Of a stretch of 64,000 nt of DNA, positions 5,338 through 50,040 are shown piece by piece (within the stretch, counting starts at the first letter, position 1; each line of letters begins with the position of its first letter). A model generated the notes under the pieces. That model did no database searches. It was not told the origin of the DNA and was given only the letters and a program-made list of their open reading frames with translations. Origin of the DNA: Thalia democratica. Lineage: Eukaryota. Position numbers and translations under genes: made by a program. The stretch lies in assembly GCA_965202585.1 (NCBI GenBank), contig OZ241826.1, positions 77,748,001 through 77,812,000 on the forward strand, written 5' to 3'.

Positions 5338-7005
5338 TTAGTATACAATAAGCAGTATGTCACAAAAGATTTTTTAAGCTTTTAGAATTTAAAGGAGTAA
5401 AACTTCAGTAACAATTGTTCTGAGTTATTTTTATTTATTTTGTAATTGTCTAATTTTATCTAAAAAATATATTATACTTTATTTTAAATTGGAATTTTAT
5501 GGAAAGTTATACTAATCCATAATAAATACATAACAAAATGTATTTTAAATGTTATTAAACCTAGTCATGTTACATCTACAAGAAATGGGTATAACTAGTT
5601 CACTTAAAAAATATGACATTTGGTGTTTTTACAATCATCAAAATAACACATACTTTCAATTAAACGAGTTAAATTTGAAACTGTCATATTTTGTTCGTAA
5701 TTTACGTATAATTTAAAATAAATAAGTTAAGTTTTTCAATTCAAACGTTTCTAAATAATTGAATGTAGTGTTTAATAAACGATTATTTGTTTACTTTTTA
5801 AAATGTTACACTACACTGATTTAAGATGAATTCTTTCAAATTTAAAAAAGTAATCAATAAAATGTTTTAAGTTCATCAAAAAGATTATTTTTATAATCCA
5901 GAATAAGTACACGTAGTGTAAGTTATATTAAATTTCTCTAAAGAAAACTTATAAGTTTATATGCGCAATAATAGTAGTTTTAGAAGAATGCAAAATTTTA
6001 TAAGTTTCGTTTTTTTTCAATATTTATTTAGTAAGGTTGTAATTCGTTTGAATATTAAAGGAAAAGTTTTAAGTGTACAAACTATTGAGTTCTTAGCAGA
6101 CTTTCATAGCGTTATATAGTCAACCGTACAAAAATTACGATTGAAAAAAGTTTTTTTAGTCATAACTAATGATTTGAGATTTATGTGAAACTAGCACAAA
6201 TATAATATACAATTCTTTTAATTTATAATTTTAAAACAGTTTAAATTTTATTTTTGTAGATTATTTTCTTATGATTTTTTAATTCATAACAACAAGTTTC
6301 AATTTACAATAAGAATTTTGTTAGCACTTATGTATTTACAAAACATGCTTATTTTGAATTTCAATCAGTAAAATAAAGTCATACATATCACAATTTCTAG
6401 CATTATTATGTTTTGTTAAACAAAGTAAAATTTTGTAAACAAGAAACATTGACGAACACTTATAGTTTATTATTTACTTAAGTTATTTAGTCACAGTTTT
6501 TAACACAAAAGTACTTTCATATAAACACTTTTACTTTACTTAGTATTAAAAAGATTAAACCAGTGCTTAGTACACGTATTGTTTTTAGGTTAAATAATAT
6601 ATAAGAACTTTAGAATCAAACAGTTTATTCACATTTGAAAGTCATAAAACTACGAAATAACAAATAAAAGCAGAGCATAATTTATTCATATTTGAGTAAA
6701 TAATAAAAAGTTGATTGCGTTTAAAACTATAATTAGTTGTAAAAAATTTGTTTAATAACTTGCTATGTACAATATGAAAGTTGTCTCTTTTTTTCTAAGC
6801 TTCAAACTATAAAACACAATTGCAAATTAATAAATGAATATTTTTTAACTTCTGTTTTTTAGCTTTTATATTGATAAAATTATTTCTAGACAAAAGTAGT
6901 CACAATATTATTTTTGACTTAGTTTACAAAAAAGACTTATTATTTTTTACATTTTCAAAGAGCCAAACATAAACAAAAGTAACCAAAATCACAAAAATTT
7001 AAGGT

Positions 7006-9560
7006 TTAATAATTTTTTTCATCTTTCGCTTGATTCTTTTCAAGTTCTTTTAGCTAAAAGTTAAAATTATTTATTTTTATATAAAAGCTAAACTTTTTAG
7101 TTCTAGCATTGAAAACTTATTTTTTATAAACTGAAAAGTATAAGAGTATAAGTACTCTTTGCTTAAAAATGTAAATTTAAAACAAAATAAAAGTTTACCT
7201 TGTTTTCGTACTTATCAGATAATTTTCGGAATACTTCAACAAAGTCTTCATATTTCATTGCCATCTAAAAGAACAAACAGATAATGAAAAGTTGTTATAG
7301 TTATGAATTATTAAAAAAAAAATTTTTTTTATATATTTCGAATTTAAATAGATTAATTTTATGGATTGTGGATTAATTAAAGTACATATGGTTTGTTTAC
7401 TAATATAAACATACATTAGGATATGAAATGTTTATAGTAGTTTTAACCTTTTTTTGTATAAGTTTTTATGTAAATAATTAATAAACAACAATTTAATGTT
7501 GTTTTAGCTCATAACATTACTTCAATTGTAAACAACTAACAAAATGTCTTTGTTCAACGTTTTTCTGTCTTCTTATTTCACTAACATAGGTAACCTAATA
7601 TTTTCAAAACTGTTGAACTGTAGTCTTGGACTGAATTAAGTTATTTTTAAGCGTTTATTTGTCATTATTATAGTTTTATTTTTAACAATTTGAACTTAAA
7701 AAAAACTTAAGATCTAATTTTCCATGAGAAAAGAAAAAATTGTTAAAAAAATAAACCTGTTCCAACTCGCTTTCGAGAATCCTTATTCTTTCTTCTTTCG
7801 ACTGGACCAAATCTTGAAGTCGCAGGTATAGAATCGCGTACTCACGTCGAATATCTTCTGATTCCTGATATTTTTTTTTTTTCGAAGTTGAAAACTTTAG
7901 AGTTATATGAAATAATAGTAAGTTTTTTTTTTGTTATTTTATACATAAATACCCTAAGGAAGTAACAAAAAGGTTTAAATTTCGTACTAAAGTAGGTTTT
8001 TAGTAAAATTTGATATATTTTTTTAAATAGCTATTTTTTGATACATATCAATATAATACCTAATTAAATTATAGTTTTTTTTAAAATAGATAAATTATAT
8101 AAAACATATTATGCTTGTTTACAACTACTAAACTTTTTTCAAAATCTTAAAATATAAAAAAACTTTGTTTGTTATCTGTTATTTTTTTAATTTGTTTTTT
8201 AAGTTAAACTGAAAACTAACAGTGTCATTTAATTTAAAATTTAAACATTATTATACAACAATCTAAGCTTACTTTACTAATAAAAGCACAAACTACTTTT
8301 TTTTTATCTGCTATAGACTAAGTTTGCTTATAATAGAAGTTAGTATTGAAGTAGTTTTTCTCGTTTACTAATTAAATTTAAGGCCGCTTATCATTTTATG
8401 AACAGTTATTTTTTAATAAGCTAGACTTCATTTATATGAATAAAGCTAGGTTACTCGCACATGAACTTTTATATTGAACAAATATCTTTATTAAGCAGTT
8501 CAAGCACTAACTAAGGTTTTAAGACGCTTTTCTTCCTCGATATACCTTTTATTTGTTAAATCATCTCTCTTTATTCTGGAGTTAATTTCTTCAGTTTGCA
8601 TTGCTACATCCTATTTGTCAAGTAAAAGTTTTACTGAGTTGAAATAAACGTTCTTTAAGAGCAAAATTAAAGTAAACTTAGAACATCAATTACACGCTTT
8701 TTACGCTTGATTATTAATAAAATATTTCTTTTTTATAAAGGTTATTAAAGTGTTTAGAGTTTTAATCAACCTGGTACTATTTCTATTAGGTTATAAAAAA
8801 AGTCTGTTATTTTTTACGTGATTTAAGAAATTCAAAACAAAGTAAATTTTGTAAAAGACAAACTCAATCAAAATAAAACTTACTTGAAATTTCAAAATTG
8901 TGGTTTGAGTTGCAACGTATTTCTCTGGTGGTGTTTTTAATTCTGTTTGAGAACTGACATTAGCGATTCTATCTTCAGTTGGTACGCGTAGGTAAATGGA
9001 TTTCTGTAAAGTAATTTAATGATTTCATTTTTATTATTGTTTTTATTTGAAAACACTCAATAATAGTTTTTTTTTTGACTTAAACATATTAAGATTTTAC
9101 TTTTAAATTTTGTATGAACAAAAGCAAACTTTCTGGTGGTACAGTATTGTCATCGCTAGAAGGGTCACTGCAAAAAACATGAAAAGAACGGTAATCAGTG
9201 CCGTCAAATAGTTTTCGGTAGGCTTATTAGCTTTACAAATAGAGTGCCCATCTAACTCGAAGGACGCATCATACATAATAGGTTTTATGTAAGGTGCGTA
9301 AGGCCTTATAACGTAAAAGTGTGAAGAGTTATCAGACGAGTATTTGATGACATTATAGTTGTTTTTTAAAAGTTTATCCTCGCATCGCATTAGATACTTT
9401 TGAAGTGTGCCTTTTCTGAAAACTTCCTCATCTGCTAGTTTACCGTTGTTTTTTTGACAAGAATTTTTGTCTTCTTTAAGGTTTTGGGTTTTTTCATCAA
9501 CAATAAAATACTTGTTTTTGTCATCATCAAAAAACTCTTGACATGTAGTTGGAAATGAGG
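7006..9560 (-). CDS. Single-pass membrane receptor, copy A: degenerate CTLD-like ectodomain, TM, cytoplasmic QT motifs and coiled coil (5' exon not located)
   Basis: GT-AG exons complement(9130-9560, 8884-9003, 8512-8610, 7757-7864, 7541-7594, 7199-7264, 7006-7053) join in frame: ..SFPTTCQEFF..KYFIV..SCQKNNGKLA..ICK..YLTALITVLFMFFAVTLLAMTILYHQK|KSIYLRV..VSSQTE..VATQTT..FQ|DVAMQTE..|ESEDIRREY..ELEQ|VTYVSEIRRQKNVEQRHF|MAMKYEDF..|LKELEKNQAKDEKNY*. Copy B has the same exon structure and phases. Confidence 0.85.
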
Positions 9561-10369
9561 CTATAAAAAGTTAAGTTAATTAGAAGTAAAAAATTAATTT
9601 GCAGAAGTTATATCTTGATATTTACGAGTTAGGTTTAAAAATACTAAAGCATACACTTAGATATGTAAAAACACTTGTTTGTTTGTTTGTAGCTAACTTG
9701 TTTATTGGTTTTAACACTTTTACTTAAACATTAAGTATAGATTTTGTTTCTATGTGATTATCCTTATAGTTTATAAAAGTATAATTGAGCTAAAGTAACA
9801 AAACTTCCTACAAATTAAATTAAACAAAACATATCAAGTAATAATTATATATGTACCTGATAAAAATAAATGTTTTCTTTAATTATTTATTAAAGTAAAT
9901 TAAAAAAATTATTTAATATAGATAGTTTAAACATACTTACTTATCGACTATTCTGTAATAGTTTATATTGAAAAGTTTAATATTAGTAAATTAGTCATAA
10001 AGTGTTTTTACATTATTCTTTTTTAAGTTCTGACATTTATTAACACTCCACTAATATCAGTTTATTTTAATTTATAAAAAAACTTTAGCAATGATAATCC
10101 AGCTTAAATATATTTAAAAAAACCTGAAGGCCTGCACTTTCCTGTAAGTGTAAGGAAAAAGTACCAAAAGTTTTTTCTAAATATAAACATCTGAAAAATA
10201 AATAGCTAAAATAAAATTATTGTAGCAGGCACATCGAAAACAACAGCTTGTATACTTTAGGATGCCTTGACGCAGTAACGTTACATTATACATACATTAT
10301 AGTTCCACATTAAAAAAGACCATTAACCAGCTTTTATTGTTTCTAGATTGAAAAATATACAAGTTTAAA

Positions 10370-11074
10370 ATGAAATTACAAATGGAAAAAAATTGCCCAA
10401 TTAGTATTACCACAAACAGTGGCACTTACACATTCTACGATAAAAGAGTAGAAAAATGCGAAGCAGAACAGATATGTCAGAGCAAAGGGCAGATACTAGC
10501 TCCTATTACAAACATGGAGGACCGCAAAGCCATTGAAAAGCTAGCTAGTCAAAAGTGTGGAATTTTTCTTGACCATTATGCGTCATCTTATCATGTTGGA
10601 CTAGAAATTAAAAAGTGTGGAAACAAAGTCACTAAAATATTTTCGAATGGGGTTGCATACAACAAAACTTTGCATGACAGGTTTTACCACTTTAATTCGG
10701 CAAAAGGGTACGAGCACTGTCTTACTGCATTGTGGGTGCCAAACGGTGGAGTTAAAGCACCTATTCCTGTAATTGGTAAATTCAATAAATGTAAAGATTA
10801 TCATGAAAGATTTATTTGTTTGGATCCAGCAAAACCTGACAATAACTCAACTGTCACTGAAGAAGCTCGTCATCTTAAAAGGTCTAAAAGAAGTGTAAAG
10901 TTTAGCAGGGAAAATGATTTGTTAGGCCAACAAAACTTTTATTTTGTGTCTCAAATGTTTGGTGTTTGTTTTTTAGCTATAGTTTGTTGTTTTTTGCTTT
11001 TAGCAAATAGAAAGCTTAAAAAAAGAAACAACTTTTTGGAAATGAAAACTAAATTAGATACAAACGGATGTTAA
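10370..11074 (+). CDS. C-type-lectin-like membrane protein, copy A (CTLD, RSKR site, C-terminal TM, basic tail), 234 aa
   Basis: CTLD hallmarks: EAEQICQSKGQILAPI, YHVGL (WIGL-equivalent), RFIC. Eight Cys are shared with copy B; sequons NKT and NST; KRSKR precedes TM MFGVCFLAIVCCFLLLA, then NRKLKKR. An acceptor (TTTCTAG, 10346) and an in-frame stop precede the ATG. Confidence 0.85.
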   Translation: MKLQMEKNCPISITTNSGTYTFYDKRVEKCEAEQICQSKGQILAPITNMEDRKAIEKLASQKCGIFLDHYASSYHVGLEIKKCGNKVTKIFSNGVAYNKTLHDRFYHFNSAKGYEHCLTALWVPNGGVKAPIPVIGKFNKCKDYHERFICLDPAKPDNNSTVTEEARHLKRSKRSVKFSRENDLLGQQNFYFVSQMFGVCFLAIVCCFLLLANRKLKKRNNFLEMKTKLDTNGC

Positions 11075-12049
11075 CTTTGTATTGTTTTAGAAAACGCATC
11101 TAAATTAGTTCCAAGCTTTCTACAATATACTATATAAACCCATTCGTTTACTTCTAATAATTTTACCTTTGACTACAGTTCTTTTAAGTTTACCTAATAA
11201 GCGATACGTAAAAGACTTAAAACAACTTTATACAGAACGTAGAATATTTATTTTTCATTGTATAAGTTTTATATTTAGTTTGACACACTATTACAACATG
11301 AGTTAATAATTTCGCCTTTTAAAATAAACTTCTTTTTTTTCAAAAATGTTACTTAGTACCTTGATGTTTGGTTTAAAACTTGTTATCAAAATAACCTTAA
11401 GTTAAATAATATTTTATCTAAAAAAAATCTTTTAAAGGTCTGATAGTTAGTTTAAGTGTTCTAAGTTTTGTTAAAACTACACTTTTTGCTAAACAGAAGT
11501 TTATGTTTTCATAAAATTATAGAAAATATATGAGCAGTACATTTGAATATTTATGGCAAAACACTTTAAAATATTTTTTTTTTATTTAGTTCGACTGTAA
11601 GTCACCTGTAATTTAAAATGTCTTGAAAGCCTTTATTCTTACATTGTTTTGAAATTGTTATCGACTAGAACATTTTTGTTATTGAGAAATAAGTTATGGA
11701 ATGAAAACAAACAAAAAAATTTAAACTCAAATGAATTTACTGTTTTAAAAAAAAAAATTTACTATTGAAATAACAGTCTTCTTTTTAAAATCGAGAAAGT
11801 TTAAATCGAGTTTTTAAAATACTTAATTTAAGGCTGGACACAAATAACTTTAAGAAACAAAATGTTTTGATTGTAGCATTTTTTTAACTTTTTTTATTGT
11901 TATAAATTATAAAAAATAAATAATTAGTAGATCATAATCAAAACTTTTTTACTTAAAGGAAAATTTTAATTCAAAACCTTTATTTTCTTCAAAACATAAG
12001 TATTTTAAGTTTTTCCGCACAAAATGTTTCGTCTAAAAGAAAAGTTTTA

Positions 12050-12405
12050 GGACAAGTAGTTTTAATCGACAGTGACAGTGTGCTTATTTTTGTGTAGAGC
12101 ATCAGCGTGTAGGTTTAGAAACTCTGTGAAAAACGTATAACATTTTAAAGCAAACACATTAATAAACCAACAAGACAAGCTTGTATACTGTTTTTAAATA
12201 ATTTCACACTATTGAGAACCCAATTGTCAATAGCTTTTCGGTCTTTCATGTTATTATCAATAGAAGTTATTATTTGCCTTATGCTCTGAATTATATGCTC
12301 TGCTTGACATTTTTTTGGTCTTTGCTCGTAAAAAGTAAAAGTACCACTTTTTGTGTCACTTAATTTTATTCGTAGACTTAATTCTATTTTCAAGAAACAG
12401 TTCAT
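12050..12405 (-). pseudogene. Inverted, decayed paralog of the CTLD membrane gene (copy A)
   Basis: SGTFTFYEQRPKKCQAEHIIQSIRQIITSIDNNMKDRKAID aligns with SGTYTFYDKRVEKCEAEQICQSKGQILAPITNMEDRKAIE. A key Cys is lost and a stop follows after 86 codons. Confidence 0.8.
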
Positions 12406-37486: not shown

Positions 37487-40154
37487 CTATGAATTGTATT
37501 CATCCTCCGCTAGTCTCATATCGAGTTCTTTTAACTATAAATTTTAAGTAGTAATTTATTTTACTGAAACTGAACTTTTTAGTACTAGCATTAAAATGTA
37601 CCTGTATTGTTTTCCTATATGTATATATATACATATATATAATAATAAAATAAACTATGAATACTTTTTGTTTAAGTATATAGATAAAACTAGTTGCAAA
37701 AGACAAAAAGTTCACCTTGTTTTGGTATTCAAGCGTAGTGCGTTCATACTTTTTCGAAAGATCGCTGAATACAGTTACGAAATTTTTGTACTTCATGTAC
37801 AACTGAAATACAAAATAAGATAAGCGAAAATTGTTATTTTAAATCTAAAAAAATTTTGATTTAGTATTTGTTATGTACATTTCGAAGTTGAACTTTTGTC
37901 TAAATGAATTTCAATTAAAGGGGGATTTTCAACTTTAATGGTAACTTTTTAATTCATACATACTTTAGAATTATTTAAAAGTTAAAACTAAGTTTAGTTT
38001 GAATAAATAAGAAAGGTTACAGCAATGAATAGTTTGTTGTTCTTTAAATTCTTATTTAAGAGCTTTAATTTTAAGGCACTAACTAAATGTCTTTGTTCAA
38101 CGTTTTTCTGTCTCCTTATTTCACTAACATAAGTGACCTAAAATTTTTAAAACTGTTAAAAATGTAGTCTTTGACCGAATTACGTTTTTTGTAAGATGTG
38201 TTTTTAACTAACTTTTGTTATAATTTTATCTTTAAAAGTTAAATCTTTAAAGCATAATTGGCTTAAGAAGCAAAATTAGTTTATTTAAAACTTCAACAAA
38301 CATGTTCCAGTTCGCCTTCAAGTAACTTGATTTTTTCGTCACGATAAAAAAGTGTTTCTTGCATTTGTAAATATTTGAGAGCATACTCTCTTCTCATTTC
38401 GTCCTGTGTCTATTAAATAGCTAAAATAAATCTTAAGTTTGAAACATTAAAAGTTTTGTGAAATATTTTGTAAGTTTATAACACTTTCCGCTAGGTTAAG
38501 ACTGTTTATTATTAGAGTAAGCTATTAGCGCTTTAAATTACTTACTAAAGTTAATACTATTGTTTTTATTTCAAAGTGTTTTAAACAAACTTTTCACAAT
38601 CAGCTTTCAAATTAACTAACTTATTGTTTTTCTTAAATCTACTAGAAAAGTAAATAAAACAAAATATGATTGTATATAACAACATAACTTATTCTAAACT
38701 TTTATATTATAAGAATTTTGTTAGCGAACCTTTTTTTTTTGTTACGCGTTTCAACAAATCAAAAACTTATATTCCGTTATACATCTATTTTACCTTTCTT
38801 TTAATGAAAAATTTTGATAATGGCGTAAATTACTACCTACTTCCTAGTTTTAAATTACATTTTGCTTATAGTAAATGAAAATCAAAAAAGCTAATATGCT
38901 AATCAAGTTCAAGACAATTTATTACTTTGTTGAACATTGTTTGTTTATTAAGTTAAGTTTCTCATATACAACTAGATTACATGCGCTTGAATAAATTTGA
39001 TATCAAACAAATATTTGTTATAAGCGAAAATAACAAAGATTGTATAAATTTTAAACGCTAACTAAGTTTTTAAGACGTTTTTCTTCTTCTAGGTATTTTT
39101 GTCTTGTTAGTTCAACTTGCTTCTTATGTTTCAAAATATTTTCATCAGTTTGTATTTCTGCATCCTGTTTGTCGAGTAAACATTTTATGAGTAAAAATAA
39201 AAACTTTTCAAGAGCAAAACCAAGTTAATTTAGAGAAAAAAATTTAAGCCTTTCACGCTAAAGAATTTATGAATTATAATTTCTTGTTTAAAAGGGTATT
39301 TTTAATATTCAAAACTTTGGAAATTTTAGTTTTGATTTTAACATTGTTTTTTTTTCAATGGTATAATATGTCTTTTTTATTCGTACCTTATTTAACAATT
39401 ATAGTACAATGTAGGCTCATAAATTTCTAAAACACTAAAATCAATCAAAAAAAAACCTACTTGAAACTTCAAAATAGTTGTTTGAGTTGAAACAAATTTT
39501 TCAGGAGGTAATTGTATCTCTGTCTGGCATGAACTGCTACCAATTTTGTCATCAGTTGGTATACGTTGGTAAAAATGTTTCTAAAAATGTAAAAATTATT
39601 TCATACTTATTATTTTTTTTTGGGCACACATTTATTAATTACCTTTTTCTGTAAACATTTTTTTTTAGTTAAAGCAAACACATAAAACTTTGTATATGAA
39701 TTTTAAATATTTTTAACGCAAACCTTTTGGTAGTACAGCAATGATATCGTTAGAAAAGTGACGGTTACAAATGACGCTATAACAATCACAAGAGCAGTTA
39801 AATAGTTGTTTGGTTCGTCAACCGACTTACATATAGCAAATCCTACCTTCTTGTAAAAAGGGTCGTACTTTTTGGGTTTGAATGAGTGAGTCAATAAAGG
39901 GTTGACAATAAAAATTGATGAATAATTATACGATGAATATCTAATTAAGTTATATTTGCTCTCTTTAAACTTGTCTGTGCATCGTGTTAAATATTTTTGA
40001 AGTGTGCCTCTTCTAAAAATTTCTTCATTAGCCAGAATACTTTTTTCGCTCTTACAAGACTTTATGTCTTCATGGAGCAACCCAGTCTTTACTTTAGCTA
40101 TAAAGTACCTATTTTGACCGTCGTAAAACTTGTCACAATTTTCAGGTAGTGGCG
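37487..40154 (-). CDS. Single-pass membrane receptor, copy B (homolog of 7006-9560)
   Basis: Exons complement(39724-40154, 39461-39580, 39063-39164, 38302-38409, 38084-38137, 37716-37802, 37487-37534): ..PLPENCDKFY..RYFIA..SCKSEKSILA..ICK..TM..YYQK|KHFYQRI..SSCQTE..VSTQTT..|DAEIQTD..|TQDEMRREY..ELEH|VTYVSEIRRQKNVEQRHL|LYMKYKNF..|LKELDMRLAEDEYNS*. The 431, 120, 108, 54 and 48 nt exons match copy A in length. Confidence 0.85.
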
Positions 40155-40900
40155 CTGTATAAGTATTTCAAAGTTAAAAATAGTATAAGTAAGTTATTTC
40201 ATTATCTAAAGACAGCAACCTCAAATAGTTATAGTTTTTTTTTTTAAGTTTACAAAAAACTATAAGCTTAAATAAAAATTACTACGTTTTACTTCACCTA
40301 TAATTAAACTGTAATTAGATTCAATAACATGTACTTTAAATACTTTTAACATACATGTTGCTTAATAAGTAATGTTTGTTAAAAAATAACTTAATTGTTG
40401 TATACTTTCTAAAAAAATTTGCTTTTACTTTAGTTTTTATATCTCAGTCATTGTTATAGTTGAAATAGTCAACAGTTTTTTTATTTTTAGTAAGTAACTT
40501 TTAGTTTTTCAAATGTTCTTTAAAGACATTGTTAAGTACAGTAAACTTTTAGATAGTAGACCAACTTTAAAAACAAGCTTACACTTTTTGAAAGATGTAA
40601 TATCTTTTTATAACTATTATATATTTTATAAATATAACACAAGCTAAAAAACCTGATAGTCCGTTTTCTCCCGTAATTGTCAGCAAAAAAATCCAAAATT
40701 TAAGTTTAAATATAATCATCTGAAACAGATAAGAAAATTAATTATTTAAATCAAATATGGTATTCATTAAATATTATTTTGTTTTACAACGTTCTCCATA
40801 AAACTATTTTTTAGCCAACATAAATGTTAAAACCTTTTTTTTAAACCCGCAAATAATCTGCTTTTATTGTTTATAGATTTTAATAACATAAAAGCTTTAA

Positions 40901-41605
40901 ATGGTTTTAAAACTAGAAAAAAATTGCCCTACAAGTATTACTACTAGTACAGGTACTTTTAATTTCTACGAGGAAAAAGCACTAAAATGCGAAGCAGAGC
41001 AAATATGTCAGAGAAAAGGGCAGATACTAGCTCCTATTACGAACATGGAAGACCGCAAAGCTATTGAAAAGATAGGTGGTCAGGAATGCGGAATTTTTCG
41101 AGAGAGTATACAAGGTTATCATGTTGGTTTAGAAATTAAGGCGTGCGGAAATAAGTTTACCAAAGTGTTTTCAAACGGAGTCAAATACAATAAAACTTTA
41201 CACGACAAACTGTACTATTTTTACCCAATAAAAAAGTTTGACTGCCTCACTGCGTTGTACCCACCAGGTTACGGAGCCGATGAACAAATTGTGGTAGTTT
41301 CGAAGTCTAATAATTGTAAAGGTTACGTTAGGAGGTTTATTTGTTTGGATCCGGCAAAACCAGACAATAACTCAACTGTCACTAAAGAAGCTCTTCATCT
41401 TAAAAGGTCTAAAAGAAGTGAAAATTTTAGCGAGGATAGTGTTTTATCAGGCCGACAAAACATGTATTTTATGTCTGAAGTTTTCGGCTTTTGCTTTTTA
41501 GCAACTGCATGTTGTTTTCTGTTTGTAGCAAATAGAAAGCTCAAAAAAAGAGTCAATTTTCTGGAAATGAAAACTGAACCATTTACCAACGAATGTAAAC
41601 ATTGA
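40901..41605 (+). CDS. C-type-lectin-like membrane protein, copy B, 234 aa
   Basis: About 66% identical to 10370-11074 by manual alignment; same Cys, RSKR and TM; in-frame TAA immediately before the ATG. Confidence 0.85.
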   Translation: MVLKLEKNCPTSITTSTGTFNFYEEKALKCEAEQICQRKGQILAPITNMEDRKAIEKIGGQECGIFRESIQGYHVGLEIKACGNKFTKVFSNGVKYNKTLHDKLYYFYPIKKFDCLTALYPPGYGADEQIVVVSKSNNCKGYVRRFICLDPAKPDNNSTVTKEALHLKRSKRSENFSEDSVLSGRQNMYFMSEVFGFCFLATACCFLFVANRKLKKRVNFLEMKTEPFTNECKH

Positions 41606-42689: not shown

Positions 42690-43005
42690 GACGGTGACAG
42701 TATGCAAAATTATGTTTCATACTAAAAATCTGCATGTGAGGTTTGAAAACTCTGTGATGAGTTTCAAATGTATAAAAATTTTTTTAAGTAAACATATTTT
42801 AAACATGACAAGTTTGTACACTTTTTTAAATACTTTCATACTAAGGACTACTTATTTGTTCAATAGCTTTTCGATCTTTCATGTTTGTATTAGGAGTTAT
42901 TATTTGCTCCATGCTCTGACATATATGCTCTGCATGACATTTTTTGGTCTTTGCTCGTAAAAATTAAAAGTACCACTTTTTGTGTCGCTTAATTTTATTC
43001 GTAAA
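42690..43005 (-). pseudogene. Inverted decayed CTLD paralog (copy B)
   Basis: SGTFNFYEQRP, then a 1-nt deletion in an A-run (about 42941-42946), then CHAEHICQSMEQIITPNTNMKDRKAIEQ. Confidence 0.75.
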
Positions 43006-46000
43006 TGCAGTTTAAAATATTAAAACTTAATAATGGTAAATTTGGTAACTGCTAAGATACAGTTTTGAAGCAAAAAAACAAAATTATTGAGTAACATATA
43101 GCTTGTGGAAAATTAAAACATTCAAAAACATTTTAGATAGTTCATTTGTTTTTTTACGAGCTGAGCGGTTGAAATAGTAAATACTTGTGTAAAGAGAAAG
43201 TATAGCGATTTTACTACATGCTTACATCATAAACACATGTGTTTTTAAAGTATTTTGAAAGTTCACAATCAAAAGGTAACATATCTTTTTTTGATTGTAA
43301 ATATATCCTTTAAATTATCAGTAATTAATGCTTAATTTAATTTTTATTATTTATAATACTTTTTCAAGCTATTCTTATTAACTGTTTACATAAATAGATC
43401 TTTGTAAAAAAACATATCAACATTCAAACAATTTTAAAAAAGTATCATACTTCAAATAGAGTTCTTAATTTTTAAACCTACTTACACATCTACTTTTTTT
43501 TTTGATTTGCAAGCAAAATGGTTACAAAAAAACATGCTTATAACTTTCAATACTATTTTTTATTTTATTCAAAATATTTTAGTTTAATTCAAAAACAGAC
43601 TAAAAATTTTAATTTGACAAGAGTCTTTTTTTATAATTATGTTTGTGTTAACGAAATTTAAACTGTTGTAAAACTGCACTATATTACAACACATTCATAT
43701 GCATTTAAACATTTGGCACTTGATACTAAGTGAAGCTTAACCATTTTTCAAATTTTGTAAAAATTTTGACAAAAGCTTTAAAATAAAAACATAAATATAA
43801 CTTTTTATTTTAGCTGTTTTTTAATAAAATTAACAATAATAAAACAATGCATTTTTTAAACATTTTTCTAATCAAATACTATGCTGTTTTTTAAGAAAAT
43901 TAAAAAGCCCCATTAACAAGTAATACAAAATATAACAAACTATTAGCACTAATTTAAATTCTGTGTAGAATAATAGATTTCATATTTAAATTCCAATCAA
44001 CAAATCAAAAAAATAGGCTAGAAAATTTTAGCCTACTAAATAATTACAACTAAGCTTACAAAAATTTCTCATGCTCGTTAAATTAAAAACTTTTTTTTGA
44101 ACAACCGATCTTATAAGTATAATAATTTTTTTAACAAAAACAAACACACAGCTGGCTATAACTTTGTTTTTTTTTTGCTTAACTACTTTTTTTTGGTTAA
44201 GACAAATGAGTATGTATATATACACATATATTTCAAGTAAAAATTAAAACTTAAAACAGTGACTTGCTCTAACAAAAGAACTAAAAACTATTTATAAAAT
44301 AAAAACTTGAATACAATAAAGTAGTCCGGAAAGAATGAAAAACAAGTAATATAAGCTGATAAATATTTGTTTTTAAGGCCATTGAAAAACAACTTAAAAA
44401 CTGTGTCAAAGTTACTTCTTAAAATAGAAAACAAGTCAAGATTTAAACTTTGACCGAAATATACCAAGAAAAGGGTAAAGCAAATAAACAAATCTGAATA
44501 TAGCTTTGATTTAAAATTTGATTATAGAGTTTTTTAAGTTGACGTTATTCTAAAATTTTAAAGTTTAATTTTAGAAAAACAAATTTTATTGTGATCGTAA
44601 GTTGCATTAGAATTTATAATCTTAACCTTATGCAAGAAAAACGAAGCAAATTTTATCAAAGGTTTTTCTAAAACATCTATGCTTAATTTCATTGAATATC
44701 TTACTTAAATCTATAGCGTTATATGCAATATTTTAAAACAGTTAGTTTATGTTTAAAACAATTCATTGGTAAAAGTATTTTTTATACACAGTAATCTGCC
44801 GAGTAACTTTGCGACGTTATAGTTTCGGTTTTAAGAGAAAAAATTATTGTACTCAACATTTTAAGCTGAGTTTAAGGGTGGCTTGGCGTTTAGCCAACAG
44901 ATCCTTCGCTCTATTGAGCACAAAAGATAGCTTTTTTTAAGAGAGTGTTCAACGTTTAAAAAAAGCTTACTGATATCTAATATGAAAGTTCATTATCGTG
45001 TAAATAGTTAAATAGCGATGAAACCAATGCGAGTTGGATAAATCAAATTTAAATATCAGTTTTAAACGGGAATATTTTCAAGTGTTTCTTACTGTATTCT
45101 TACACTATACTTTATCTAACTTTTACTACTTGCACAAAATAGTTATGTTGTTTTTTGGTTAAAATATCTAAATAAATATTATTTTATTTAAAATTACATG
45201 TAAAAAGCAACCTTACCTATTCAAAAATTATTTTAAATATAAATAATTTATTGAGACAAAATGAATGTTGTTTAATAAAACTTATAACAATGATTTTAAA
45301 AGTTTTAAACAAAAACTTTATTATTTTTCTACACTCAACGTAAAATAAAATTACACGATTTAAAAATATTTTCAATAAAAGCATAAATGAAAGTATTTAA
45401 ATTATAAAATTAATTTCTATGCACAAAGGGATATTTTTAACAACTATAAAACTATTAATTTTTTCTATTTTATTAACAAACTAATAAAAAGTAGCATCTA
45501 CTTACTTATAGTAAAACAACTAATTGTATATTGATAAGAGTTTAGTTTAGACTTTAAGATATATATAGAGGTGTGCAAATTAATCATTTTATTCGTGACC
45601 GGTTTCGGTGGCAAAAATTGCAACATATTAAATATTCAATTTGCATACCTCTATTTAAATAAACTCTTTACATCCCAGATTCCCAGAAAATTGAGCATTC
45701 ATTTTTATTTAAGGCAAATAACTATATGACTTTTAGACATAAAGATGATTAAACTGGTAAACGAATATACTTTTTATCCTAAAACAAAAAAGAAATTGTT
45801 GAAACGTAATAAATCAAATTTATAGATTAAAAAGTTGGAATTTGATCAGTTTTAACTTAATAATAAAATATATAAAATTTATGATTAAAATAAAAACAAA
45901 AATCTTTTCAAAGGTAATGACTAGAACTTTTTTTTAGTAGTAATAAGTAAAAACTTTTAAAGTTTCAATTAAATGTTATCAAAATTAGTTTTTTATTTAA

Positions 46001-47106
46001 AATAAACACGAAAAACTGCGTAAACGTCCTTAGTAGAACCCTATTGTACATATTTAACATTAGTAATTGGTCGAGACATGGCTTTATAAGCAACTTAAAT
46101 AGAGAATATGATAATAAATGTACATTTAAGTTTTAATAGTCACGAAAACAAAGTTATAGCATCAAAAATTTTGAAATATTGTTTTACTATATAAATTAGA
46201 CAGATAGTTTAAGTCTAAAGTTAACAGTTTTAATAAGAAAATAAATAAATATACTTTTTAGTAAGAAAAAGCATAAAAACGCTTATAAAACTTCTTATGT
46301 AGAGGTTTTTACCACAAAAATTAAAAAAAATAATAAAAATGTAGTTTAAGCAGGTATAGTATATAATCTTACAATAAATAAACTTTTCAACAGAAACAAA
46401 AACACATATAAAGCGTCTTTAAAGTTATTTTAAACAAAGTTTTATGAAAAAAATAAATAAGTCAAGAAAGTATCTTTTCATAGAAATTTCTACCTGCAAT
46501 CCTTCCTTATTGACAACACATATTACAATTCAGATAGTTTAATATAAACAGTTAAATTTAGTTTTTAACACTAACAATACTTAACTTAGTTTATAACTAA
46601 AATTTAGTAGTTTGTTTAGGTAATATAATTTTCAATGACATTAAACAATTTAATAAAGTTTGGTGAGCAGTTATAAAAAAGATAATCTTACAAAAAGTAC
46701 AAACTTTTTGGTAAGAACAAATACAAAAAAAAATATTCCAAACGTTTTAAGTAGAGGTTTTTATTACATAAATTAGAAAACTAGTTTAAGATGTAAGTTT
46801 AGCATGTTTAATAAAAATATTACAACAAATCAGATTTTAGGCTTAAACAACCACAAAAGAACATTTAAAACGACTTCAAAGTTGTTGTAAACAAATTATT
46901 TGAAAAATAAATATGTTTGTATCTTGTGTTTGTTTTACAAAATCATTTTTTCTTTGTTTATTTTTTTGTTTTATTAAGAAAATAGATATATAGTTAATTG
47001 TTTTATCATATATTTCTCGAAATTACATCTAAGAATATAATTGAAGTGCAAAAATTTGTGTAAAATTTATAAAGTATATAAACGCTAAATATAGCAATTT
47101 TGCAAT

Positions 47107-47188
47107 ATCCGATGGCAGAGCGGTTTAGGCGCGAGACTTGGAGTGCATCTTTATCACCTGTCAATGAGTTCAAATCCAGTCTCGGCCA
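47107..47188 (+). pseudogene. Degenerate tRNA-like sequence (tRNA pseudogene or SINE head) inside the transposon
   Basis: A-box TGGCAGAGCGG with a Leu/Ser-type D-loop, B-box GAGTTCAAATCC, 3' CTCGGCCA. The anticodon stem does not pair. Confidence 0.55.
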
Positions 47189-47209
47189 TTTTTCAACATT
47201 AATTGTTAA

Positions 47210-48087
47210 GGCCATAGGGGAGGGGGTCCACTTTGTTTTTTACAACTTGATCTTATTTTGTAGAATTTAATCTGAGCTATCAGACACTTTTAACCGTTTA
47301 AAAAAACTCAAAGTAACTTTTGAGATATAAGCGATCAAAGAAAGGGCGTTCAATAGGTTCCTTATGGAAGGGGAAAACTAAAAATGTAAATAAAGACTAT
47401 TTCACTAAAAATCTATCTCCTCCTTCATTTCTTGAGTAATCTTTCTCAAATTTTTACAGAATGTGTATCAATAAACTTTAAAGAGATCTATTGTAGGAAT
47501 TTTTTAAATTTTGAGTAAAAAAAAATTATTGTCAAAAAACTACCCTTTTTTTTAGTTTTTTGTGGATAAAATTTTTATTTTTCAAAATTTCAAAAATTCC
47601 AACATTTAGATTCTTCAAAATATTAAAATGAACATTTCCTGAAAATTTGAAGTCTCTAGGTCAAAAAATGAAGGAGGAGATAGGTTTTTAGTGAATTTTA
47701 AAATTTCCGAGAAAATTGACCCCAAAGTCCATACGTTTATATTGGAAAATTTTTACAAAAAGTTAAATATCTCAAAAATTAAATGATATTTTTGAATTCT
47801 ATAAAAACTGGCTTATAGTTTGTACTTTAAGCTTTCATATAAAAGCCAAAGTTAATTTTAGTAAAAAAAATGTTGGACCCCCTATGGAATTTTGACCCTA
47901 TGGCATTGGACCACCCAATCATATGAACATTTTATGTTTAATATATTTTTATTAGAGAAAAAAAAATATAAAAACTAATTATAATAATTCTTTTATAGAA
48001 ATATTATCTTACAGTATTTACTCTAAACTTTCAAAGAAGAGTCAATTTTATATTTTGTAAAAATAAAAAAATTAACTCCCTATGGCC
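47210..48087. mobile_element. Nested non-autonomous element with TTAA TSD (Kolobok-like signature)
   Basis: TTAA-GGCCATAGGG ... CCCTATGGCC-TTAA; internal inverted segment TTCACTAAAAATCTATCTCCTCCTTCATTT / AAATGAAGGAGGAGATAGGTTTTTAGTGAA. Confidence 0.7.
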
Positions 48088-50040
48088 TTAAAAAATGAAT
48101 AGCTTGGTCATAAGCTTGTTTTTTTTTCAAACTGTTGAAATAGGATTTTTTCTACTAATGCATAATTCACTTTCTGAAAATATGAGGTCAATTTATTAAA
48201 AAAACTAAGAAGACATAATTTTAGTAATTTTCTTTATAGTTTTGAGGAAATCACCAATAAAAAATTGTTCTTCTACATTTCAATGAAACTTTTTATACAA
48301 AAAACTTTATCATAAAATTTAATTAGTATTTTTTATTCTGTGAAAATCATCTTATGGTATCTAGTTATCTTATCGTATATAATTTTAGCAATCATAAATA
48401 TATTTAAATCTAATATTGAGAATAAAAAAATAGGATAATGGACTCAAAATGCATAAGGGTGGTTCCAAATTTATGAAAAACTTAGTACTTACCTTGTGAC
48501 TCAAAAAGTTTAAGTCCAAATATTTTGTTTCTTTAAAAGTTGTTTTTTTTTCAAAAAGTCAGTAGAGGAATCACATTAGCTCTGCTGATATAAAACAGGG
48601 CTAATTGAAATTACCTAACTGAAATTTTAAGATACTAATTATAATGTATAAGTTCTTCCACTTTAGTTAGACTCTTCCCAGTATTTTTTTTGATTCTTGT
48701 GATAAGTCAGAATGTAAGCGTTTACAACAGTGTTTTTAAAGAAAACAAAGTTATAAAAACTACAATCCTGAGTTTCCATGATTTAAAAAAACCTTTCAAA
48801 AAATCTTTCCTGATAATAAAAAAAAAATTAATATAAGCTACCTTTTTGAATTTTACACTAAAAATTATACCTTTTTTAAACAAAATAAAAGACATTAAGA
48901 CTACTTAAGTAAATAACTTTCAAATAAAAAACTTGAGTTAATTTCAAAAAATATCTTTCACCAAAAAATTTATTAAAATATGAAAATACTACTAAAATTT
49001 TACTTTCCAAAAAATTCTACTGACAAAAAAAAAGCTTCCTTGAAAATTTAAACTACAAATTTTGCCTGTTTTGAACAACAAAAATAAAACCATTTAATTA
49101 ATTACAATCAATAATTGAATTTTCTTACAATAAAAAACTTTTTTAGTATATACCTTAAGCTTTTAAAATGGTATAGACATCAAATAATTATCTTTTATAA
49201 ATAATGAGAACTTCAACTAAACAAATGGACTTAAAACACTATAACATTCTTATTATTATCACATTCTTAGATTAGGCTAACATAGATTTTATTCATTTAT
49301 GTGCTGTTAAGTGTGTCACCATTATTTTTGTATATTATTTCAAATTTTATAAAACTTTACTGTTACACTCAAAAGTTTTATGTTATATTATAATGGTTAG
49401 TTCTTAGCATCAATTTATACGGTTGAATGATTTTATCTCATTTAAAAAAACTATATTTCGTGCTCAGTAGAGCGAAGGATCTGTTGGCTAAACGCCAAGC
49501 CACCCGAGTTTAAAACTGCTACAAATCTTTGCACCTGACATATACCTTCGCTTTTATCACAATTTTTTTCACAAAATAAATTTGTATTTCCAAACTTTTG
49601 AACTAATCTTTTTTGATATAAAGATTAAGTATAAATGATTAAGTAGTTACAATTTTTTTAACTTAAATTATAAGTTTTTCTTTATTTTAATGTTGAAATT
49701 GTTAAAATCACAAATATTTTAACTCACTAAGACTTTAAAATTTAACTTAAAAGCCAAGCTTTTAGTAATTGTTTTCGTATAAATACAATACTTAATAAAC
49801 GCTTGTTTATATAAACAAAAGTCATGCAGTTAGATTTTGTATTTAATATTTATCTAATGTTTTACAGGTAGAAACCATTTAATTTGCTTAGCCAAGTAAA
49901 ACTTGCTTTCATTGAAAACTTTTAAATGAGAATTTAAATGTATTATTACGTCACTATACTAAGCCTTCAAGTACTGAACTTAGTAAAACGGAAAGTTTTA
50001 GTTTAAGTATTAGAGTGGCGCTTATATTCAAAGTCTCAAT

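Follow-up and report, generated by a model that had tools for sequence, protein, structure and literature searches.

A co-duplicating pair of genes for lectin-fold membrane proteins in the pelagic tunicate Thalia democratica

Does a tightly linked pair of strongly divergent lectin-like membrane genes in a tunicate mark a locus of self/non-self recognition, or does it represent something else? The question is raised by a 64,000-nucleotide (nt) stretch of the Thalia democratica genome (GenBank assembly GCA_965202585.1, contig OZ241826.1, positions 77,748,001–77,812,000; hereafter the window, whose coordinates are used below), which has a GC content of 22–29% and belongs to an assembly of 802 Mb. 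Comparison of the window with itself revealed two homologous blocks, A (1–27.4 kb) and B (32.8–62.6 kb). In each of them a minus-strand gene, referred to here as the receptor gene, and a plus-strand gene for a C-type lectin-like domain protein, referred to as the CTLD gene, are arranged head to head. A first reading of the DNA (the original prediction) had described this pair as intact in both copies, and both genes were indeed found in A and in B; it had further proposed a candidate self/non-self recognition locus. The reading that we favor, and hold to be probable rather than secure, is a partnered CTLD receptor module that is specific to its pelagic tunicate lineage. In such a module the receptor would be a type I membrane protein of ~300 aa with a signal peptide, a compact CTLD, one transmembrane (TM) segment and a ~139-aa tail, and the second gene is intronless and encodes a full-size CTLD running from the initiator Met, then a neck, a TM segment and a short basic tail. 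In ~10 duplications the two genes have been copied together.

We therefore begin with the distribution of the two genes across the genome. Receptor copies numbered five when the exon alone served as query and ten when a profile was used. Nine of the ten receptor exons have one of the ten nearest CTLD paralogues at a distance of 0.8–8.5 kb, and the tenth, on a small contig, is decayed. The locus had been thought to comprise only two copies; instead, A and B belong to three tandem units, the third of which (Z) lies 40 kb upstream in the same array, and seven further pairs exist elsewhere in the genome, on C1, C2, C6 and C7. In Z, A and B the two genes stand head to head. At C2:59.35 Mb and C1:38.1 Mb they converge on each other; at C6:57.84, 57.92 and 60.92 Mb and at C7:28.92 Mb the arrangement is same-strand or mixed. 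The receptor exon is broken in one of the pairs outside the array, and both genes keep intact open frames at 8 of the 10 loci. The receptor and CTLD trees are congruent, with a common deep split and a common B+Z pair, and the pairwise identities of the two genes are correlated (r = 0.86), the receptor evolving faster than its CTLD partner. The congruent trees and the shared genomic pairing mark the two genes as an old module whose duplications take in both. The proposal of an undescribed linked membrane-gene pair diverging as a unit was thus borne out. Two CTLD–receptor pairs on C6 (57844502–57853414 and 57915590–57924502) lie 71 kb apart and have identical scores and translations; they stem from a very recent segmental duplication or else from a segment duplicated in the assembly.

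The CTLD gene is also a member of a far larger family. At least 150 scored matches (333 candidates) were found on all large chromosomes, many of them clustered, for example at C4:30.9–32.2 Mb. These at least 150 genes are intronless, and in each the domain runs from the initiator Met without a signal peptide, followed by a TM helix and a tail. A profile search of public proteins returned 140 CTLD relatives, all of them unnamed open reading frames (ORFs) from marine metagenomes without a precomputed Pfam domain, and profile searches of public proteins found no sequence relatives of the genes outside marine metagenomes.

What do the two proteins look like? Structure prediction followed by Foldseek, which had been suggested along with the original prediction, returned CTLD folds for both ectodomains. 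The model of the CTLD protein has a pLDDT of 77–96 over residues 10–155, and its matches in the Protein Data Bank (PDB) were langerin, CD94/NKG2A, mincle, LOX-1, dectin-1 and NKR-P1 (E ~1e-6, TM-score 0.72–0.77 by target). The AlphaFold model of the receptor ectodomain has a pLDDT of 86. Its Foldseek matches were weak and every one was a CTLD; in an exhaustive VIA-align comparison, all of the top 50 matches were CTLDs, with Z of 7–8.8 and 85–105 of ~110 residues aligned. Both ectodomains are accordingly modeled as CTLD folds of the double-loop alpha/beta type. The nearest language-model cluster for the CTLD protein was chondrolectin/Lectin_C (0.93, 174 shared features). In Pfam searches the CTLD protein stayed below the gathering score of Lectin_C (15.5 bits vs a cut-off of 22.6, E 0.029), and the receptor exon gave no match. 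No EPN or QPD motif for binding of Ca2+ and sugar could be read from the alignments in either domain; the position of WND is occupied by F-N-K in the CTLD gene, and the receptor domain is devoid of the long loop. A profile–profile comparison of the receptor with the CTLD family (hhalign) gave a probability of 0.6% and thus no sequence homology, which indicates that the two families have only the fold in common. Complex prediction for the two ectodomains returned a score of 0.00, which is evidence neither for nor against binding.

The receptor gene of copy A was modeled as six exons on the minus strand encoding 300 aa, with AG/GT at all sites and all junctions in phase. Exon 1 (10124–10190, 67 nt) carries the ATG and 22 signal-peptide-like codons; the acceptor ttttcag lies directly 5' of the ATG, and the donor CAG/GTTTTT is in phase 1. 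This exon, which joins exon 2 in frame, has counterparts in B (40653–40719, minus strand) and in the metagenome relative TA. Exon 2 (9130–9560 in A; 39724–40154, minus strand, in B) has a canonical acceptor, encodes the compact CTLD ectodomain and the TM helix, and ends in ...YHQK/GT. Four Cys and an N-x-S/T sequon are conserved in it, and its frame is open for 153–155 codons in each copy. Four predicted cytoplasmic exons follow: exon 3 (8884–9003; 40 codons, acceptor ttacag, donor GTAAGT, phase 0), which carries SQT and TQT motifs and is 59% identical to B and Z; exon 4 (8512–8610; 33 codons), with an MQT motif and a charged helix; exon 5 (7757–7864; 36 codons), which is coiled-coil-like; and exon 6 (7519–7594; 25 codons and TAA), the best conserved exon of the tail (87–90% between A and B), whose stop is common to A and Z. 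The predicted tail of ~139 aa thus contains all three kinds of QT motif (SQT, TQT and MQT). Every receptor exon has a counterpart in B, in Z and in the Tara contig L026. Downstream of the receptors at C2 and C1:38.1 Mb, the exon-6 core YVSE[IL]RR.K has weak matches on the same strand and in the same order; the exon-6 match that follows the C7 receptor is more divergent. The exon-5 counterpart of Z (~window −32837 to −32948, C1:~77715100) matches in two frames, a possible frameshift; the Z receptor may be decaying.

A receptor with a long cytoplasmic tail had been part of the original prediction. The tail itself stands, its exons being conserved in A, B, Z and the metagenome relative and joined in phase at AG/GT sites; one further block that had been counted in the tail (7205–7270, minus strand) falls away, as it fails to join in frame. 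This coding-like block (MAMKYEDFVEVFRKLSDKYENK, translated MAMKYEDF...) has AG/GT flanks and is conserved in A, B and Z, and it was rejected as a tail exon for want of an in-frame join to exon 6, the exon that closes with the stop shared by A and Z. An alternative exon, an untranslated region (UTR) or part of another gene are possible readings of the block. A GTG-initiated hydrophobic ORF (10297–10425, minus strand) was likewise rejected as the signal exon of the receptor; it has no ATG and is not conserved, and exon 1 takes its place. A word-based protein search found no spliced receptor transcript and no full-length receptor protein, no related locus was found among the JGI metagenomes, and a pattern search for the junction of exons 2 and 3 gave no match. 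An exhaustive search with a hidden Markov model of the receptor returned just eight short exon-2 ORFs, all of them reading into the intron, and no spliced product. No RNA runs containing the A or B pair were found.

With exon 1 at this position, the first exons of the two genes lie ~155 bp apart, and the ~800 bp given earlier for the nearest exons no longer holds. The divergent spacer (10191–10346) is bounded by two predicted trans-splice acceptors. On its far side, the CTLD gene of A occupies 10347–11074 of the plus strand, with a 23-nt 5' UTR after the acceptor tttctag and an intronless coding sequence (10370–11074) of 234 aa. Its counterpart in B (40901–41605, plus strand) also encodes 234 aa and is 89% identical to that of unit Z and 67% to that of A. 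In the A protein the CTLD comprises residues ~9–155 and is followed by the neck, a hydrophobic segment close to the C-terminus (TM, ~190–212) and a basic 22-aa tail. The furin-type site of the original prediction corresponds to an R-S-K-R motif in the neck, which is found in the array clade of the CTLD family.

Where does the CTLD protein begin? The acceptor lies between 10346 and 10347, and the stretch from there to the ATG at 10370 has stops in all three frames; with no frame open upstream, this ATG is the start. A cDNA contig of paralogue P0007, which is 60% identical (L046, JGI 3300019037), shows a spliced leader joined to the homologous acceptor, 23 nt before the ATG; its positions 1–24 contain a remnant of the SMART oligo and then a 16-nt leader, ATTCTATTTGAATAAG. 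The sequence ATTCTATTTGAATAAG is the 16-nt spliced leader published for Ciona (PMC1488885). Since this full-length cDNA from a Tara sample carries a Ciona-type leader, the pelagic tunicate lineage shares the leader with ascidians. By homology with the paralogue cDNA, the CTLD gene is probably trans-spliced to the spliced leader as well. An upstream signal-peptide exon was considered for the CTLD gene and is excluded by the stops in three frames and by the paralogue cDNA beginning with the spliced leader. In 22 aligned paralogues and ~120 relatives from databases, the initiator Met stands 2–8 residues ahead of the first conserved Cys, and no N-terminal hydrophobic stretch was found among them; 117 of the 120 database relatives have a C-terminal hydrophobic segment. 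The charges after the TM segment (N-R-K-L-K-K-R) and the conserved N-K-T and N-S-T sequons suggest that the domain faces outside. mRNA-sized contigs (~1 kb) were found for A-type, D-type and Z/B-type CTLD genes in the Tara series that also includes the cDNA sample. At least four members of the array clade are represented by cDNA or by contigs of mRNA size.

Along with the original prediction, a test had been proposed for an ectodomain ratio of nonsynonymous to synonymous substitution (dN/dS) above 1. We estimated dN/dS by NG86, with 30-codon windows over ten CTLD sequences. The whole-gene values were 0.12–0.35 for every pair. Windows of the CTLD ectodomain gave 0.07–0.38, none of them above 0.4. 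The receptor ectodomain gave 0.24–0.31, and its higher window values (up to 0.93) rest on 1–4 synonymous changes. Taking both ectodomains together, dN/dS was 0.11–0.31, and the highest well-supported window reached 0.39. The range is thus 0.1–0.4 with no ectodomain window above 1. Synonymous divergence of A from B and Z is saturated in both ectodomains, and the low A–B identity reads as old paralogy under purifying selection. CTLD codons 151–195 (10820–10954, the neck with R-S-K-R) have a dS of 0.32–0.35 between deep paralogues vs 1.2–2.0 elsewhere in the gene; this low-dS tract could reflect gene conversion or constraint at the nucleotide level.

Why, then, do A and B differ so unevenly? The identities of ~44% for the receptor and ~66% for the CTLD protein reported earlier were remeasured as 46% and 67%. 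At the nucleotide level, A and B are 65% identical around the receptor ectodomain exon, climbing to 74–81% around and beyond the CTLD gene and to 89–98.6% towards PRIM2. The PRIM2 side itself gave 95.6–98.6%, against the ~99% given for PRIM2 in the same block, and its exons match Pfam DNA_primase_lrg (E 1.8e-21). ORFs of 150–234 codons in DNA of ~25% GC cannot be of chance origin. Unit Z is 86–87% identical to the left part of B over ~16 kb, the RNase Z region included. A is 65–77% identical to Z or B across the pair and 81–85% just downstream. The PRIM2-side part is missing from Z, and the right part of B regains homology with A at 89% (to 98.6%) directly past a 4.6-kb insert. This insert (44875–49506) is specific to B and lies exactly at the step of A–B identity from 81% to 89%; it contains a repeat that recurs at 65.2–65.9 kb and, upstream, at −56 kb and −49 kb. 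These data fit B being a mosaic, Z-like in its left part and A-like in its right, with the 96–99% near PRIM2 stemming from a later block duplication. The simplest history comprises old tandem units of Z/B type and A type, then a large duplication ~11–14% ago in which the second copy lost its A-type left part. Under this mosaic history the contrast of '44%/66% versus 99%' mixes old with young paralogy. The A–B divergence therefore does not serve as evidence of a hyperpolymorphic locus; A and B are old paralogues in a three-unit array with saturated synonymous sites. That A and B are ordinary paralogues within a large and dispersed family was the outcome that the original prediction had set against itself, and most of it is what we found. 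An inverted relic of the first ~65 codons of the CTLD gene is present in all three units (12196–12393, minus strand, in A; 42847–42963 in B; −28277 to −28444 in Z); it lies ~1.1 kb downstream of the intact CTLD gene in Z, A and B, and occurs also in the Tara contig L030.

Variation among individuals and ocean samples was examined for the same locus. The nearest relatives in public data are from Tara Oceans marine metagenomes and from cDNA-yielding samples of that series. Tara contig L026 is colinear with 6299–11151 and 88% identical overall, with 92–97% across the pair and 78–90% in the tail introns. One sample yielded both an A-type contig and a Z-type Tara contig (L043), the latter 93.6% identical to Z, and a Tara relative of the unlinked C2 paralogue is 90% identical. 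The metagenome relatives of the A, Z and C2 pairs differ by ~6–12% from the reference, like the flanks, and at such similar divergence the locus is no more divergent than the background. In a second individual (X3), 43% of the 31-letter words were recovered for the A pair and 72% for the B pair, and its contigs over CTLD-A 10480–10840 (360 bp) show 0–1 differences. CTLD types P0004/P0005 and P0007 occur in the ocean data and are missing from the reference.

Do the two genes work together? We give close to an even chance to the view that both proteins act jointly on the cell surface as CTLD partners that bind protein and not sugar, forming either a heteromeric receptor or a linked receptor–ligand pair. 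The long-tailed partner would give such a complex its cytoplasmic link, and furin-type cleavage might release the CTLD ectodomain. The partnership draws its support from the strict co-retention of the genes through ~10 duplications and several rearrangements. What the analysis established are the gene structures, folds and family sizes, the co-duplication, the selection regime, and the expression and trans-splicing of the CTLD clade. Several points weigh against it. Block duplications can keep adjacent genes together without a functional tie, and the complex prediction reached no verdict on binding. The predicted receptor gene model and its presumed expression are read from conservation alone. 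A disulphide-rich domain of 185 aa would have to cross the membrane unaided by any signal peptide, and NG86 estimates are rough in DNA of 25% GC. In the source individual, the intron at 8702–8953 is present in two Logan contig versions at ~47x each, one equal to the assembly and the other with 33 differences and 10 gaps; two versions of equal depth imply a heterozygosity of ~13% in this intron, and hints of heterozygosity were confined to it. X3 is essentially without a contig of at least 80% likeness over 9160–9343, the C-terminal half of receptor exon 2, with the flanks and CTLD-A covered; the hole may reflect a deletion, an artefact of filtering or an allele that is very divergent, and such holes prove nothing.

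The first of these points leads to the alternative that survives best, namely that the genes are unrelated, fast-evolving lectin-fold neighbors without functional coupling, merely co-carried by segmental duplications. The duplications do span tens of kilobases and take in several genes, RNase Z and a part of PRIM2 among them; hhalign detects no sequence relationship between the two families, no support comes from complex prediction, and ~140 other members of the CTLD family have no receptor neighbor. Simple co-carriage does not, however, readily account for adjacency at every locus of a clade whose members are just ~40% identical, nor for its survival through changes to head-to-head, convergent and same-strand order, nor for frames intact in both genes at 8 of the 10 loci and for congruent trees. 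We consider this explanation unlikely, while granting it real weight.

Allorecognition or self-incompatibility comes next. Here the pair would be a hyperpolymorphic receptor/ligand determinant, A/B/Z, TD and P0007 would be long-lived haplotype lineages, and matching of the ectodomains would decide self versus non-self. Known allorecognition and self-sterility loci (Botryllus fuhc/BHF/fester, Hydractinia Alr, Ciona s-/v-Themis) combine extreme allelic polymorphism with Ig, EGF, PKD or fibrinogen domains. The present locus resembles them in its tightly linked genes for membrane or secreted proteins in a colonial or hermaphrodite marine invertebrate; it differs from them in its CTLD domains, in divergent copies that are paralogues and in purifying selection. 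The linkage of two membrane genes in a tunicate, a peak of divergence at the receptor ectodomain exon (65% at the nucleotide level, with flanks at 77–81%), the Tara types P0004/P0005 and P0007 absent from the reference, and a TD CTLD that resembles a mosaic of A-like and B-like segments would all suit such a locus, as would the second, 13%-divergent contig of equal depth in the sequenced individual and the hole of X3 over 9160–9343. Against this, dN/dS stays at 0.1–0.4 in both ectodomains, in close and deep pairs alike; A and Z each have a ~6%-divergent relative in one Tara sample, as expected of paralogues; the second individual has a nearly identical CTLD-A, and B as well; the Tara divergence equals that of the unlinked C2 paralogue; seven further pairs lie on other chromosomes; and the step in A–B identity falls at an insertion junction, which fits mosaic duplication. 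The self/non-self reading was therefore not supported, the divergent copies of the locus being tandem paralogues and its divergence in Tara samples that of the background, and we regard this explanation as very improbable. That A and B are two haplotypes of one locus set in tandem by the assembly can be dismissed almost entirely: A-identical contigs of the source individual do have about half the depth of a neighboring collapsed contig and the flanks are 96–99% alike, but three units cannot be two haplotypes, the 154 kb contain no run of N and hence no gap, Z lacks the right part and B has an extra insert, the second individual holds both A and B sequence, and A-type and Z-type contigs occur in Tara samples.

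To which known systems does the partnered CTLD module come closest? The vertebrate natural killer (NK) gene complex contains genetically linked CTLD receptor–ligand pairs, NKR-P1/Clr, NKp80/AICL and NKp65/KACL. As in these pairs, both putative partners here are single-CTLD membrane proteins without a Ca2+/sugar motif, the adjacent genes multiply together in clusters, and the CTLD folds match NKR-P1B/Clr-b (6e7d), NKp65/KACL (4iop), NKp80 (8qmd) and LLT1 (4qkg). In contrast to them, the TM segment is C-terminal in both genes, whereas the vertebrate proteins are type II; sequence homology is not detectable, and one partner has no signal sequence. The tail, too, differs, with QT motifs and a coiled coil and without a recognized immunoreceptor tyrosine-based inhibitory or activation motif (ITIM/ITAM). 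CD94/NKG2 and the alpha/beta chains of snake-venom snaclecs, which are among the top structural matches, form heterodimers of two CTLD chains from neighboring or related genes; the two chains here, whose pairing is putative, differ greatly in size and architecture. The type I chondrolectin/layilin class has the same order of CTLD, neck, TM segment and tail as the CTLD gene. Its members have a signal peptide and introns and are single-copy, whereas the CTLD gene is intronless, has no signal peptide, belongs to a family of at least 150 and falls below the Lectin_C threshold. Literature searches for salp or thaliacean genome papers on the CTLD family returned nothing relevant. New here are the CTLD folds of both ectodomains without sugar motifs, the signal-less intronless CTLD family, and the receptor signal-peptide exon ~155 bp from the CTLD gene.

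A bolder extension of the partnered module would be that pelagic tunicates independently evolved a linked CTLD receptor–ligand system like that of the NK complex. Its content would vary among haplotypes (D-type and P0007-type units being seen only in ocean samples), zooids, gametes or blood cells would use it for self or 'missing-self' recognition, and one partner would be surface-bound without a signal peptide and sheddable at the furin site. We regard this extension as a long shot, and the idea that the locus serves self-recognition is not supported by anything found at it so far.

If the partnership is true, lectin-fold receptor and partner genes, adjacent in the vertebrate NK gene complex, would have been kept adjacent a second time and independently in the closest invertebrate relatives of vertebrates. 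The steep divergence gradient between the tandem copies illustrates that such a gradient can stem from mosaic duplication rather than from balancing selection. For the family as a whole, at least 150 genes for CTLD membrane proteins escape standard domain annotation in this genome, and they raise the question of how such proteins are inserted into the membrane.

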